Source of the DNA: Octopus sinensis
Lineage: Eukaryota
DNA length: 64,000 nt
Direction: 5' to 3'
Assembly (NCBI RefSeq): GCF_006345805.1
Contig: NC_043018.1
Coordinates: 16,368,001-16,432,000 of the forward strand
Numbering within the stretch: position 1 is the stretch's first letter; every line of letters starts with the position of its first letter. Under the pieces are notes generated by a model. The model made no database searches. It was not told the DNA's origin and saw only the letters and a program-made list of their open reading frames with translations. The position numbers and the translations under genes are program-made. Of this stretch, positions 1,481 to 55,236 are shown piece by piece.

Positions 1481-1521
1481 AATTTACAATTGTTTCATCG
1501 GTGGTCGATCTCATGAGAATT
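1481..1521 (-). ncRNA. Degenerate minimal type I hammerhead motif (core G5 mutated to C)
   Basis: Minus strand: aatt CTCATGA g atcg-accac-cgat GAAA caattg TA aatt. Helix III is the palindrome ACAATTGT; helix I is 4 bp. Confidence 0.55.
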
Positions 1522-1624
1522 GCCATATTATGTCAGAAATATATGTAACTGTTGATTCAATATACGTCATTTATAATCCAAGGAAAACCTCCGAATGAAA
1601 TTATCAACATCATCATTAGTAGTA

Positions 1625-1757
1625 GTATTAGTATTAGTAGTAGTAGTAGGAGGAGGAGGTGGGGGCAGCAGCAGCTGTAGTAGTAGTAGCAGTAGTAGAA
1701 GCAGCAGCAACAGCATTATTATTATTATTATTATTATTATTATTATTATTATTATTC
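1625..1757. repeat. (TAG/CAG/TTA)n trinucleotide microsatellite
   Basis: Directly visible. Confidence 0.95.
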
Positions 1758-2295
1758 AGTGAGAGAGCAGTGCATGCCATCAAAGTGACACTGGGGTAAA
1801 ATATACGAATCCCAGTATACCCATCATGACTACCCGTCTGATAAGGGTACATCAGGCACCTGCATCACAACCATATGTGCGCGACATGGTGACCTAATAT
1901 CAAAATAAACAGCACATGACCTTGCAGGTGGGGCCCAGTTAGAATTTTCTTCTTGTCGAGTAACACATCCCGCTCAAAAGGTTAAGGGTTGTTTAAGGAT
2001 GTTGAACAAAACACCCATGTTTCCAGAGGTGAATTATTCAAACCTCTAAGAATTCCTTTCAACACATAGCTATGATGCTCCCCCACTACTTCTGCTCGTT
2101 ATCAGAAATGCACATATCGTCAGCCACTAAGGGACATGGTCAACTAGTTATGGTCAAACAACTGACAAGCAAATCTGTGGTATTGAGCAGAGTATTTGGT
2201 GTAGCCCATCTTTTATACCAAGACAAAACAACGTACATGATAACAGTTCCAATCAGTTAAGATCAGAAGCCATGAGAGCCACTGCCTGATACTAC
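1757..2295 (-). mobile_element. Probable retroposed interspersed repeat with a (TAA)n tail
   Basis: About 540 bp of higher-complexity sequence ends directly in a (TAA)n tract on the minus strand. Single copy in this window, so the family is inferred. Confidence 0.35.
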
Positions 2296-3087
2296 ATATT
2301 ATTATATTTATGTATGTACGTACGCAGGACTGTATAAATATATGTATGTCATCACCCATGTCTCTATATTAGCTGAATTCTTTTTTACTTTAACATACTT
2401 GATAATGAATGACTATGTGTTACAAGCTATTCCTTTCTCTTCCTTATAATAAACCTAATGAGTATATTTTGGTATCGACCATAGCTGAACAATCGTCTGC
2501 TTGTTATAGCAAAGTTCAAAATGGCCAGTAACTTTTCTCCAGACACTTGAAGTACTTAATTCAGTTTTTTTCTCAAATTTTCTTCATTGGTGAAGTTTTG
2601 CATACTAATGATGAAAATCACATTCATTTTTTTCTTGAAATTTATAATAAAAATATTTACAAGCATTTAAAACTCTAATTTTCTGGTGAAATTTTGAATT
2701 ACTGTAAGTGGTTAGAAGAAATTTAACAAGATTCAATGGCCTGTAAATGAATTGAATAGAAACACAGAACATTTTCCTTGTAACTACTCTTTATCATTAC
2801 CAGATTGCAAATTTAAGTTTACTATTATGGGAGAAATTCAGTCGTGAACGATTAAGATCGTCTGCTACGCTGCGCTGACGAAACATTTATAGAACTGATT
2901 TGCTTCCGGTTGGTCTGAAAATGGTAAATGAAGAGACAGAAAGAAAAAGTAGCAACGCATAAATCCATGCGTGTAGTTTGTGAAATACGACTCTCAGAAT
3001 ATTGGCGGGGTGAACCGTCATATATCAGTAAGTAAATTAACGTCCAAGTGCTGCCGCATATACTGTGTAGTTACTATATTTCGTATG

Positions 3088-3282
3088 TGGAGACGCAATG
3101 GCCCAGTGGTTAGGGCAGCGGATTTGCAGTCGTAGGATCGCGGTTTCGATTCCCAGACCGGGCGTTGGTCGGTCCGAGGCTACAGCAGAAAACACTTGCC
3201 CAAGGTACCATGCAGTAGTAATGAACCCGGAACCATGGGATTGAGAAGCAAGGTCCTTACCACACAGCCACGCCGGCGCTAA
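3088..3282. mobile_element. SINE A head (+) fused to an inverted SINE C 5' segment (-)
   Basis: 3088-3166 is the family A tRNA-like head; 3166-3282 is the reverse complement of the family C 5' region. Confidence 0.8.
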
Positions 3283-3984
3283 ACCTTAATTGTTTCCAGA
3301 ATATTTCAAATTATAAACGTAATTTACGAACACCCTGTATTCTAAGAGCTTATACGACCAACAAAATTAAACACACTCTAGCATCGGCTGAATAGCGACG
3401 AATACAGTGAACCGATAAACTAAGAATCTCTTTTTGCTTCGTGTTTCGTATTCTGTAAAAAACACATTTCTTATTTCAGGTGAAGAATTTTGTTTCTGGC
3501 TAATTTTTGTAATATAAATTATAATGTAGTTACGAAGTCTAAATACGGCAGCTGCAACTTTTATCTTAACGAATTAACAAGTTTTACATGAATCATTTGT
3601 AGTTAGCTGAGAAGAAAATAGGTGTTATATCTATGTTTTTCACAGACGAAAGTGTGTTTTGGTTTGTGTTTTAAGGTGGGGAAATGTTTATCTAATTCTT
3701 TATTGAAATATATAAAATACAAACATTTGTTTATGGATAAGGTCACGGTGTTATTGTGTTGTTTTATTTTATTTGTTCACTTAAGTAATTCGTTTATTCT
3801 TTAGAAGTATCTTGAAAATAATCCGATGTTCTGAGATTTTGAAATCAGGCTTTGCTACATTAAACTTTGAGTATCAGTTACCCACCACCTCCAAATATAA
3901 GCTACAAGTAAAAAAAAAACCGAAAAGAACCTAGGTAAATTTTACATGTTTTCTTTTTTATTTCATTGATCTGTCAAAGGCGAA

Positions 3985-4290
3985 GTAGAGGTGCATGGCC
4001 TAATGGTGATGATGTTGCACTTACGATCATGAGATCGTGTGTTCGATTCCAGGAGAGAGCGGAGCGTTTACTTGAGCATGACGAAGTGAAGGCGCATGAC
4101 TGTATTTAGGCTGTTGAGGTCGCGATTGTAAGCTCGTGATTTCGATTCCTGGACTGAGCGGTGCACTGTGTTCTTAAGCAAAGCCCTCCGCTTCACTTTG
4201 CCCGGTCCACTCAGAGGTAAATGGGTTCCAGTGATAGACAGGAAGTTAACCCTGCATCGAAGAAGCATCCCGCGCAGTGGGGTTTGTGTT
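3985..4290 (+). mobile_element. Degenerate tRNA-head SINE remnants (family D-like)
   Basis: Two decayed heads with gttcgattcc/tttcgattcc B-box, then tgtgttcttaagcaaag..gtccactcag resembling 46091-46368. Confidence 0.55.
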
Positions 4291-4344
4291 GTAACCTGAG
4301 TCACTTATAGGCCGTGGAGACAGGGTAAAGCTTCAACCATATGA

Positions 4345-52749: not shown

Positions 52750-52885
52750 TAAAGGTCTACCAACTCACAAAGCATTGGCTGGTCTGCTGCTATAGTAGAA
52801 GACATTTGTCCAAGGTGCCACACAATGGAAATGAACTCTAAACCATGTGATTACATAGTGAGATCCTTAACCATACTGTCATGCC
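52750..52885 (-). mobile_element. SINE family C 5' fragment, diverged
   Basis: ctatagtagaagacatttgtccaaggtgccac.. Confidence 0.7.
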
Positions 52886-53463
52886 AACGTCAGATGGTAT
52901 TTACGAGAAAAAATATCTAACCGTGTGTGTGTGTTTTGTGTGTGTTGTGTGTGTGTGTGTGTGGTGTGTGTGTGTGTCTGTGTGTGTGTGGCAGTTTCTA
53001 AAAATTAGTTGTTTGCACGTTTGTAATTAGTAAAAAGATCAAATTGCCAGCTAGTTTACATGGCGGGGAAAGGAAAACTATCAATGTTGTCTTTGCTACA
53101 CAGAACTAGCAAGTCTTATTGAATTACTTATTAAAAGTCGTCAGAATCCTCTAGAATAATTAACGTAAATTTTAATGAAGATCAAAAAAAAAAAAGCAAA
53201 TAAATAAATTTACTCCAGAATAATTAATGCAAATTCTCGTATAAACGCGTGGGTTAAAAGAAATAAAACGTGGAGGGAGGATGAGAGGAATTCATTTCAC
53301 GGTTCGAAATGTATGTAAGTCGATAGCTATAAATGTGCGTATATAAATATACATATGCGTATAACAAGAATTAATTAAAACCTTAAAAATAAACAAAACC
53401 CTCCATATATATATATATATATATGTGTGTGTGTGTGTGTGTGTATGTGTATGTATTTATTTA

Positions 53464-53870
53464 TAGATAGATAGATAGATAGATATATAGAAAGATAGAT
53501 AGATAGATAGATAGATAGATAGATAGATAGATTAGATAGATAGAAAAATAGACAGATAGATAGATAGATAGATAGATAGATAGATAGATAGATAGATAGA
53601 TAGATAGATAGATAGATAGATATAGACAGATATAGATAGATAGATAGATAGATAGATAGATAGATGGATAGATGGATAGATAGATAGTTAGATAGATAGA
53701 TAGATAGATAGATATAGATTAGATAGATAGATAGATAGATAGATAGATAGATAGATAGATAGATATAGATTAGATAGATAGATAGATAGATAGATAGATA
53801 GATATAGATTAGATAGATAGATAGATAGATAGATAAATAGATAGATAGATAGATAGATGGATAGATAGAT
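53464..53870. repeat. (GATA)n microsatellite, about 400 bp
   Basis: Directly visible; shorter GATA tracts at about 28298-28375 and 46510-46600. Confidence 0.97.
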
Positions 53871-54054
53871 CGGCGAGTTAACTTGGTTTTCCTTAACAAC
53901 AACGTAACCTTCATATAATTAAGGTAGCTTCGGTTTCAAGAGGATCCAACTGATAACCCGTCCTGGGGTAATAATTACATGAGAGGATCTGCAAGCTGGG
54001 AAACATATGTGGCCTAAATTTTACTTCCTCCACCCACTCAATTTGGATATATAT

Positions 54055-54428
54055 ATTTTCTTTCATGGGTTTCAAGCATTTGACTGCGACCATGCTGCAG
54101 CACCGCATTTAAGTTAAACAAATCGACACCAGGAGGAGTTATTCTTTGTAAGCTTACTGCCTATTCTATCGGTGTCTTTTGCCGAATCGTTAAGTTACTG
54201 GGACGTAAACACCCCAAAATCAGTTGTCAATCGATGGTGTTGGGATAAACACAGACACACAGGCATATATTCATGTATATATACGACGGGCTTCTTTCAG
54301 TTTCCGTCTAGCAAATCCACTCACAAGGCTTTGGTCAGCCCGAAGTTATAGGTGTTACGCAGTGGGACTGAACCCGGAACCATGTGGTTGGTAAGCAAGC
54401 TTCTTTCCACACAACCACGCCTGTGCCT
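54055..54428 (-). mobile_element. SINE family C, diverged near-full copy
   Basis: Collinear with C, with an internal deletion near 54345. Confidence 0.88.
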
Positions 54429-54522
54429 ATATATTATATATATATATTATATTATATATATATATATATATATATATATATATATGTATGTATGTATGTG
54501 TGTGTGTGTGTGTGTGTGAGTG

Positions 54523-54806
54523 TGGAGGCACATGGCCTAGTGGTTAGAGCTGTGGACTCACGGTCGAGGGATCGCCGTTTCGAATCTCATACCAGGCGAT
54601 GTGTGTGTATATGAGTGAAATACCTAAGCTCCACGACGCTCCGGCAGGGTGGGGGCCGTCCCTGCTGTACTCTTTCGCTACAAATTTCTATAACTCTTTC
54701 TTCTGTTAGCCTGCTCGCCTAGCCAGCGGGGTGGCGTCATTTGAAAGCTAAAAAAATGCGAAGCGCATTGTTACTAGCGATGTGTAGCCTGGTCGGTCAC
54801 GGTGAT
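54523..54806 (+). mobile_element. SINE family A2, diverged
   Basis: tggaggcacatggcctagtggttag..ctggtcggtcacggtgat. Confidence 0.85.
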
Positions 54807-55142
54807 ATATATATATATATTATATATATTTATCTGACAACCGGCCCCTACCTATACATGTCTACACACATATACATACATAGACATAAATGCAGTTATA
54901 TACACACACTCATACACACACATAAGCAATAAAACTAATTAACCAGAGCAAACACCCCCGCATCCATATTCATAGAGCATGCATACTGTCCTTCTTATTT
55001 TCATAAATTTTCATAAATTCCTCTTCCAAACATTTTTGACGTCATTGCTTTTAACGGATTTTTAAAATCACTCATTATCACTGTGGTCAATATGTAGCAA
55101 GCCATAGAAAAGTTTTTGTCCGTCTTGAGGCTGATTGATTTT

Positions 55143-55236
55143 CCTTGACTTTCCTGATGAGAAGACGGCATAATGCACCTTATTCCTTCAGAATTGAGAA
55201 TATGCAGTCTTCGGAAACGTGTGTTGAAATTAAAGG
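55143..55236 (+). ncRNA. Type I hammerhead motif (family F, second copy)
   Basis: ccttgactttc CTGATGA gaagacggcata..tatgcagtcttc g GAAA cgtgtg TT gaaattaaagg; collinear with 43828-43922. Confidence 0.72.

Follow-up and report, generated by a model that had tools for sequence, protein, structure and literature searches.

Hammerhead motifs and their elements

The window analysed here, the whole 64,000-nucleotide stretch at positions 16,368,001 to 16,432,000 (forward strand) of Octopus sinensis contig NC_043018.1 (NCBI RefSeq assembly GCF_006345805.1), contained minimal type I hammerhead ribozyme motifs (min-HHRs) in short, microsatellite-bounded elements of about 130-400 bp without an open reading frame (ORF). 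Six sites were convincing, with C3 of the catalytic box at 5952+, 23269+, 23709-, 41807-, 43911- and 55154+, and they belonged to five unrelated families, designated A, B, D, E and G. We consider it likely that the window holds relics of several unrelated short ORF-less families, probably non-autonomous and derived from Penelope-like elements (PLEs), that carry PLE-type min-HHRs. The elements and motifs of the robust set were as follows.

5899-6035 (+): element A, about 137 bp by sequence reading, in (TA)n with TATATAA at both sides
5946-5991 (+): motif A, apparently intact minimal type I hammerhead; CUGAUGA 5952-5958, GAAA 5972-5975
5946-5951/5986-5991 (+): motif A helix I, UCUAGA/UCUAGA
5959-5971 (+): motif A helix II, GGG/CCC over U.U
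5975-5984 (+): motif A helix III, palindrome ACAUGCAUGU; predicted cleavage 5985/5986, H17 = A5985
23202-23422 (+): element B, about 220 bp, between (CA)n and (TA)n
23263-23325 (+): motif B; CUGACGA 23269-23275; H17 = U23319; helix I weak; helix II strong (GAUG-c-CGGAG...CUCCG-a-CAUC), with a bulged C ahead of G12; helix III the near-palindrome ACUCUGAGU
23507-23773 (-): element G, about 265 bp, between two (TA)n tracts
23638-23716 (-): motif G, apparently intact minimal type I hammerhead; CUGACGA 23709-23703, GAAA 23656-23653; helix I 7 bp, AAUGUUG/CAACAUU; helix II UCAU/AUGA over A.G; helix III palindrome ACAAUUGU; predicted cleavage 23645/23644, H17 = A23645
41548-41965 (-): element D, about 400 bp, between (TA)n tracts
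41724-41810 (-): motif D; CUGAUGA 41807-41801; H17 = C41727; helix I only 3 bp; helix II long, 9 bp plus 2 pairs, with G10.1-C11.1; helix III ACCCGUGU, one mismatch short of a palindrome
43760-44042 (both strands): composite insertion E, a full copy at 43760-43924 (-) head-to-head with a 5'-truncated copy at 43925-44042 (+)
43833-43917 (-): motif E1; CUGAUGA 43911-43905; H17 = C43839; helix I 6 bp; helix II long, with G10.1-C11.1; helix III ACAUAUcU, with G16.2 changed to C
55150-55229 (+): motif E2, in another copy of family E (78% identity); CUGAUGA 55154-55160; H17 = U55225; helix II with 11 of 12 pairs; extra G ahead of GAAA; helix III ACGUGUGU

The box C3-U4-G5-A6-N7-G8-A9 was intact at the six sites and at 29508+, the box of a further motif, C1. 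The six core motifs and C1 also shared G12-A13-A14-A15.1, a helix III, U16.1, an H17 other than G, and type I order. Helix III was palindromic in A and G, in C (ACGU) and in the consensus of a variant family F (ACCAUGGU), and near-palindromic in B and D; the family E palindrome, ACAUAUGU, was free of mismatches in the truncated sister at 43925+ only. This reading of core and helices confirmed the first-pass annotation in its description of the sequences as minimal type I hammerheads with a palindromic or near-palindromic helix III, and each position that it gave was the low-coordinate end of a motif string really present. The G10.1-C11.1 pair was found in D, in E1, in E2 (with the extra G ahead of G12) and in B (with the bulged C). 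An unpaired nucleotide lay between A9 and position 10.1 in the two copies of family C (C1 and C2) and in F; formally this also held for A and G. Helix II reached 9-12 bp in D and E, and helix I measured 3-7 bp.

Within composite insertion E the two arms were complementary over 118 nt at 95%, and the next (TA)n tract lay at 44030-44063. The plus-strand copy was truncated inside helix II and retained a perfect GAAACAUAUGUC, indicating that the G16.2-to-C change in E1 post-dates the insertion. Taken together, E1 and E2 restored a perfect 12-bp helix II, and the E copies jointly restored a perfect helix III. Beside this insertion, at 44105-44311 and between (TA)n tracts, lay an almost perfect inverted repeat whose 99-nt arms were 91% complementary across a 9-nt spacer. 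The repeat contained no hammerhead core, and Rfam matched it only as a microRNA-like hairpin; it may represent another element present as two truncated copies head-to-head, or a miniature inverted-repeat transposon (MITE).

Scan, controls and the possibility of chance

The window was AT-rich (33-45% GC), and tandem repeats occupied 24% of it (Tandem Repeats Finder, TRF). The motifs might therefore be chance matches in AT-rich, hairpin- and microsatellite-rich DNA, and the CUGANGA boxes alone did occur at chance frequency (28 in the window vs 27.5 +/- 5.5 in shuffles). A first version of the descriptor scan, which permitted no mismatch in any helix, gave 0 matches in the window and was dropped; unpaired bases do occur in real PLE ribozymes, which made this version too strict. 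With one mismatch per helix permitted, 4 complete motifs were found vs 0.77 in dinucleotide shuffles, and the intermediate and strict tiers each found 3, vs 0.10 and 0.01, respectively. The shuffled control that the first-pass annotation had put forward thus did not yield similar rates.

Natural hairpins are lost on shuffling, and therefore decoys with a permuted core on real sequence were the fairer control. In these, the real sequence was kept and the letters of both catalytic boxes were permuted, giving 539 decoy cores. Scoring followed the published min-HHR architecture, with at most one unpaired base permitted at each end of helix II, and took in helix II as folded by ViennaRNA, a self-complementary helix III, and helix I. 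At a score of at least 10, the true core gave 7 motifs vs a decoy mean of 0.078 (maximum 2). A complete type I hammerhead context surrounded 7/28 boxes (25%) vs 0.43% for the decoys (binomial P 3e-11). When exactly one core substitution was permitted, at a score of at least 9, the enrichment was marginal (7 vs 2.7 +/- 1.8), so that core-mutated sites were individually inseparable from chance.

As positive controls, the scanner recovered the experimentally validated Poseidon_Ac ribozyme (score 7.9) and the Sitophilus PLE ribozyme (score 8.8), which made the threshold of 10 conservative. The Sitophilus oryzae sequence, PPTJ02000576.1, is a complete PLE with a reverse transcriptase (RT) ORF of 761 aa. 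Its min-HHR, CCU-CUGAAGA-U-GCUAGC...GCUAGC-GAAA-CG-UU-AGG, stood at 5305-5345 (+), 22 nt past the stop codon, and an identical inverted copy lay upstream at 2272-2312 (-).

Rfam returned no hammerhead family for the whole window at gathering thresholds. At E<=10 none was among the whole-window matches listed, and none was found on sub-windows of 151 and 581 nt. The expectation that ordinary annotation would miss these motifs was borne out on sub-windows of 150-600 nt, and the lack of an Rfam match is also what chance would predict. The best permissive matches were mir-297, mir-3149, mir-1277, mir-466 and a pestivirus 3' untranslated region (UTR) model. All of these fell on (TA)n, (CA)n or (CATA)n microsatellites (e.g., 59290-59369, 17075-17670 and 43338-43408) far under gathering scores, and were composition artefacts.

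Four individual sites (20184+, 2123-, 1481- and 22934+) were each compatible with chance, as was the marginal enrichment of the one-substitution class. Against this explanation stood the 7 motifs vs 0.078 in decoys, the per-box P of 3e-11, and the 3 motifs vs 0.01 in shuffles. Independent features that had not been selected for also co-occurred with the motifs, namely proximity to (TA)n, inverted copies, and sister copies that restore helices III and II. The motifs of the robust set are not chance matches. For that set of six the explanation is refuted, and it holds only for weak individual sites; as an account of the window it is very improbable.

Weaker, variant and rejected sites

Outside the robust set, the following sites were read.

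29504-29538 (+): motif C1, GUUU-CUGACGA-A-(degenerate helix II)-GAAA-CG-UU-AAAC, inside an element at 29432-29641
51924-51959 (-): motif C2, a decayed relative of C1, 69% identical over about 210 bp; core CCGAAGA, box at 51955-
46762-46830 (-): motif F1, a U3 variant, box at 46826-; CCUG-UUGAGGA-A-GACUU...AAGUC-A-GAAA-CCAUGcU-C-CAGG
47087-47417 (both strands): composite insertion F, a core-less copy at 47087-47274 (-) head-to-head against 47289-47417 (+)
47291-47297 (+): box UUGAUGA of motif F3 (47287+ in the first-pass annotation), a U3 variant in the plus-strand copy of composite F
1481-1521 (-): possible relic, AAUU-CUcAUGA-G-AUCG-ACCAC-CGAU-GAAA-CAAUUG-UA-AAUU, box at 1517-
22929-23014 (+): extra hammerhead-like motif (scan site 22934+), UGCAA-CUGuAGA-...-GAAA-CGGCCG-UA-UUGCA

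Motif C1 had an intact core in the canonical PLE form GAAACGUU with a degenerate helix II, and this form matched both the validated Poseidon_Ac ribozyme and the Sitophilus PLE ribozyme. C1 is a probable PLE-type hammerhead site on this resemblance, and the block CUCGAAACGUUAAAC was conserved 15/15 in C2. F1 taken alone was inseparable from chance (score 9.8). The family F consensus gave ACCAUGGU as helix III, and the core-less minus-strand copy of composite F retained the same palindrome.

The possible relic at 1481- showed the full architecture with G5 changed to C, lay 900 nt from any (TA)n and scored within the decoy range. Its placement in one family with 23638- was rejected, since the sequences do not align. 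The motif at 22934+ had A6 changed to U, a perfect 8-nt palindromic helix III (ACGGCCGU) and a 5-bp helix I; its score was also within the decoy range, and it sat 250 nt upstream of element B. Two sites were rejected as hammerheads. At 20184+ there was a box only, with no closed helix II, G at position 17 and no helix I. The site at 2123-, which the scan added (score 10.5), was probably spurious, with 7 G.U pairs and a 95-nt "helix II", and lay 1.5 kb from (TA)n.

Twelve hammerhead sites in at least six unrelated families had been proposed for the window. Six of the twelve were robust; among the others, 20184+ failed, 1481- carried the G5-to-C change, the F sites were U3 variants, and C2 had the core CCGAAGA. 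No sequence was shared between the families, as claimed; as to their number, five were firm and two more were probable.

Element anatomy and insertion context

In each unit the ribozyme was 5'-terminal or no more than about 30-75 nt from that end. Every robust motif (6/6) had a (TA)>=6 tract no more than 161 nt away, compared with 20% of positions taken at random (P 7e-5, or 3e-4 with B and G counted as one locus). C1 (154 nt) and C2 were likewise near (TA)n, and the dubious hits were not. Four families (A, D, E and F) had, directly upstream of the ribozyme-bearing copy, a further copy of the element's 3' tail or 3' part in inverted orientation. The left arm of element A (5899-5945) was an inverted, diverged copy of its 3' tail (5992-6035), and in element D 48 nt of the 3' end were repeated in inverted orientation upstream of the ribozyme (41839-41886 vs 41548-41595, 88%). 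Such arms were found in A, D, E1 and F3 and were absent from B, G, E2 and F1, and their inner ends fell at variable points. As E2 and F1 had no inverted arm, the arms were not fixed terminal repeats.

This arrangement bears on whether the elements are MITEs, that is, miniature inverted-repeat DNA transposons (e.g., of the TA-targeting Tc1/mariner type) that carry a hammerhead module by happenstance, with the arms as true terminal inverted repeats. The core motifs all adjoined (TA)n, as that origin would lead one to expect, and Tc1-Mariner elements and MITEs are abundant in Octopus vulgaris (PMC13282606). However, B and G had no terminal inverted repeats, and E2 and F1 were solo copies without the inverted arm seen in the related E1 and F3. 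The internal point at which the inverted copy ended also varied, lying inside helix II in E and F and leaving the tail only in A and D; such variable truncation has been described for PLEs (PMC8557442) and is unlike the fixed ends of MITEs. A DNA transposon origin would also leave unexplained the presence of a hammerhead in all five unrelated families, and we regard it as unlikely, with some residual probability for A and D.

Coding capacity, copy number and arrangement

Pfam recognized 0 families among the 139 ORF segments of at least 55 aa in the window, and tblastn with the Poseidon_Ac PLE protein found no match there (best E 4.1). The absence of a Penelope RT/GIY-YIG ORF from the window, noted at first reading, was thus upheld, and these negatives indicated that the elements are non-autonomous. 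A search with the Poseidon_Ac RT-endonuclease core retrieved 4581 PLE proteins, and no cephalopod was present among the 120 matches listed. No sequence similarity was found between the families, and each had at most 3 copies within the window. The density of robust motifs was about 1 per 10 kb in the window, lower than the 1 per 5 kb first proposed; no motif was found in 40 kb of O. vulgaris loci, so the window density is not to be extrapolated genome-wide.

The lack of coding capacity is shared with strict metazoan non-long-terminal-repeat (non-LTR) retrozymes, whose tandem repeats give rise to self-cleaved and ligated small circular RNAs as transposition intermediates; on that view, each copy in the window would be a solo monomer. 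The elements agreed with retrozymes in being 130-400 bp long and poor in GC, in carrying type I hammerheads, and in including highly self-paired units, of which element A is one (PMC7229834), and a 2026 preprint argues that animal retrozymes derive from PLEs. On the other side, TRF found in the window no head-to-tail array of hammerhead-bearing units of 150-450 bp, the arrangement typical of retrozymes. The only long-period array (184 bp x 9, 30923-32605) was SINE-like, without a ribozyme. The ribozyme stood at the 5' end of the unit and not at the 3' end expected of cleavage-to-cleavage monomers, and the motifs were of the minimal PLE type with no identifiable loop 1/loop 2. A retrozyme origin in the strict sense is improbable, and it overlaps a non-autonomous PLE origin more than it excludes it.

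Predicted folding and state of the copies

The unconstrained minimum free energy (MFE) structure of the homodimers of A and G was the dimeric hammerhead. Helix II formed within each strand, helix III as an intermolecular duplex of 10 or 8 bp, and helix I was formed, with both boxes unpaired. The gain of the dimer over two monomers was 11.5 kcal/mol for A and 7.8 kcal/mol for G, and in the monomer MFE structures of both the core was mis-paired. For B, helix II and the intermolecular helix III were predicted to form and helix I was not. D, E1 and E2 did not reach the dimeric hammerhead fold, in line with their defects in helix III or at the junction. Only A and G appeared intact, and the predicted topology of their dimers resembles that of an active hammerhead. 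Most copies are probably dead, to judge from G16.2-to-C in E1, the extra G in E2, the bulged C in B, the helix III mismatch in D, and the decay or U3 of C and F.

The motifs could also be regulatory ribozymes selected by the host, like the conserved hammerheads in introns and UTRs of amniotes. Beyond the apparent integrity of A and G, nothing specific spoke for such a role. The motifs belonged to families that are repetitive, in decay and located between microsatellites, disabling changes distinguished the copies of one family, and there was no gene context within the window; host selection is extremely unlikely.

Other repeats in the window

Several further repeats occurred in the window. The tandem array at 30923-32605 (unit 184 bp, 9.1 copies, 92% match) resembled a tRNA-derived short interspersed nuclear element (SINE), with a T-arm-like GTTCAAATTCCGCCG, and had neither a hammerhead core nor an Rfam match. 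At 55893-56351 (-) lay the C-terminal tail of the RT of a long interspersed nuclear element (LINE; RGHSEKL...FSVRV..WNKLP), 88% identical to O. vulgaris PKU43604.1. Pieces of the same LINE recurred at least 10 times in the window, in both orientations, e.g., at 6193-6370, 28062-28225, 45933-46070, 56172-56275 and 57333-57431. A G/A-rich 50-bp minisatellite at 8730-10053 (26 copies, 94% match) explained the GC skew of 0.42 at 8-12 kb and three overlapping artefactual ORFs of 430-460 aa. A degenerate (GAT)n tract of 2.9 kb at 47738-50609 gave rise to a low-complexity ORF of 972 aa (-), with a GC skew of 0.47, and a 25-bp minisatellite (GCCAGTTACAATCCGTTACAATCTA) occupied 61125-62963 (74 copies, 94% match).

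Origin and proposed mechanism

The link to Penelope, which the likely origin of these families supposes, was strengthened by the (TA)n proximity, the upstream inverted copies and the identity of the family C form with that of PLE ribozymes. Several observations weighed against it. The scoring was tuned after the candidates had been seen, with decoys and positive controls scored identically. No motif was scored by any Rfam hammerhead model, so the covariance search of the Infernal type that had been suggested as a check came out negative with these models. Position 10.1-11.1 was U.U in A, A.G in G and A.A in F, and B and E2 had an extra nucleotide before G12. No PLE ORF or pseudo-LTR (pLTR) was linked to any family within the window. 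Two genic O. vulgaris loci (40 kb, reached via the LINE ORF) contained no family member and no strong motif, and further copies of families E and A were absent from two metagenome pattern scans. A and D had terminal inverted arms and TA-rich flanks, as MITEs do. Lastly, the published min-HHRs of PLEs cleave poorly in vitro, where insertion does not require cleavage (PMC4209133, PMC11167929).

If the elements do derive from PLEs, a PLE reverse transcriptase/GIY-YIG endonuclease encoded at another locus would copy their RNA in trans into DNA that is AT-rich or made up of (TA)n, as the PLE literature suggests, and such copying would often leave an inverted 5'-truncated copy beside a fuller one. 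In multimeric or paired transcripts, two ribozyme copies would pair via the self-complementary helix III. The resulting dimer could have two active sites, each cleaving after H17 to give 5'-OH and 2',3'-cyclic phosphate ends. We infer both the mobilisation of the window elements by PLE enzymes and their catalytic cleavage.

A more speculative and rather doubtful possibility is that the families share only the 5' dimer-type hammerhead, a short tail and a (TA)n-targeted inverted-copy insertion, that the hammerhead is a portable 5' module of unrelated ORF-less mini-elements, whose structure and not sequence would be recognized by the PLE machinery, and that the ribozyme is a parasite of PLEs recruited repeatedly. 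Recruitment of the ribozyme by non-autonomous elements was speculated upon by Craig et al. 2021 (PMC8557442). If the module is portable in this way, A and G may still be active and yield processed small RNAs in cephalopod tissues.

The motifs are of an already described kind, PLE-type min-HHRs, newly seen in a cephalopod. A full-text literature search for hammerhead ribozyme and octopus found no description of these motifs in Octopus, and the Octopus repeat papers searched treat Penelope and no ribozymes; the present findings extend Penelope-type minimal hammerheads to a cephalopod genome. A naked-eye reading of raw sequence caught real catalytic-RNA motifs that Rfam missed wholly. Their consistent anatomy (ribozyme, short tail, (TA)n insertion and upstream inverted copy) offers a handle for annotating ORF-less Penelope derivatives, and also on what Penelope enzymes recognize in their templates. 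The general picture is unchanged: the abundance and heterogeneity of such motifs in metazoan genomes have been recognized since 2014, and decay has affected most of the window copies.

Comparison with known systems

The window motifs resembled the min-HHRs of PLEs, on which Lunse, Weinberg and Breaker reportedly also wrote in 2017, in their type I order with an open helix I, the CUGANGA...GAAA core, a long helix II and a short helix I. Further likenesses were a frequent extra nucleotide after A9, a self-complementary helix III implying dimer action, and the occurrence of many sequence-unrelated families per genome as single dispersed or opposite-strand copies that canonical models miss. Family C had the GAAACGU(C/U) form of Poseidon_Ac and the Sitophilus PLE letter for letter. 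Min-HHRs were defined in PLE pLTRs and are very numerous in metazoan genomes, in heterogeneous families (Cervera & de la Pena 2014, PMC4209133). Helix II in them is described as long and helix I as short, A9 is followed by an extra base, and 15.2-16.2/loop 3 is palindromic; activity in vitro is low and dimer-dependent (PMC4209133). Most genomic min-HHRs are single motifs, solo as in the window, or opposite-strand pairs 100-700 bp apart (PMC4209133), which the pairs 23269+/23709- and 46826-/47291+ resembled. Unlike classical min-HHRs with their 4-nt ACGU, most window families had a palindrome of 8-10 nt, closer to the variants with a small palindromic helix III known from Drosophila, rotifers, shrimps and mosquitoes (PMC4209133). 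They also differed from PLE min-HHRs in the mismatch that A, G and F have in place of G10.1-C11.1, and in having no linked PLE ORF or pLTR. The U.U at the base of helix II in motif A has a natural precedent in the axolotl retrozyme ribozyme HHR_Amex2, and such ribozymes act as dimers (PMC7229834).

Metazoan non-LTR retrozymes are, like the window elements, short, AT-rich and ORF-less, with type I hammerheads (Cervera & de la Pena 2020, PMC7229834). They have been proposed to derive from PLE pLTRs (Cervera & de la Pena 2020, PMC7229834; Li et al. 2026 preprint), and animal retrozymes have been argued to be non-autonomous PLE derivatives with variable proportions of monomers (2026 preprint, Li et al.). 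Retrozymes form tandem arrays and circular RNAs, whereas the window had solo or inverted copies only, and the loop-loop tertiary contacts usual in invertebrate retrozyme ribozymes were not identifiable in the window motifs.

PLE insertions are typically accompanied by an adjacent inverted copy truncated at its 5' end, and microsatellites are their favoured targets (Craig et al. 2021, PMC8557442). In the anole, the DNA cut by the PLE endonuclease is AT-rich; the ribozyme of this PLE acts with the help of protein and sits at the pLTR/ORF junction, the 5' boundary of the coding unit (PMC11167929). The window elements shared the inverted truncated copy, the microsatellite or AT-rich target and the ribozyme at the 5' edge of the unit; they were 10-20 times shorter than an autonomous PLE and had no RT/GIY-YIG ORF. 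PLEs are a major order of transposable elements in Octopus, with an expansion at a Jukes-Cantor distance (JC) of about 0.2 (PMC13282606, PMC8967140), which is compatible with the 78% identity between the two copies of family E.

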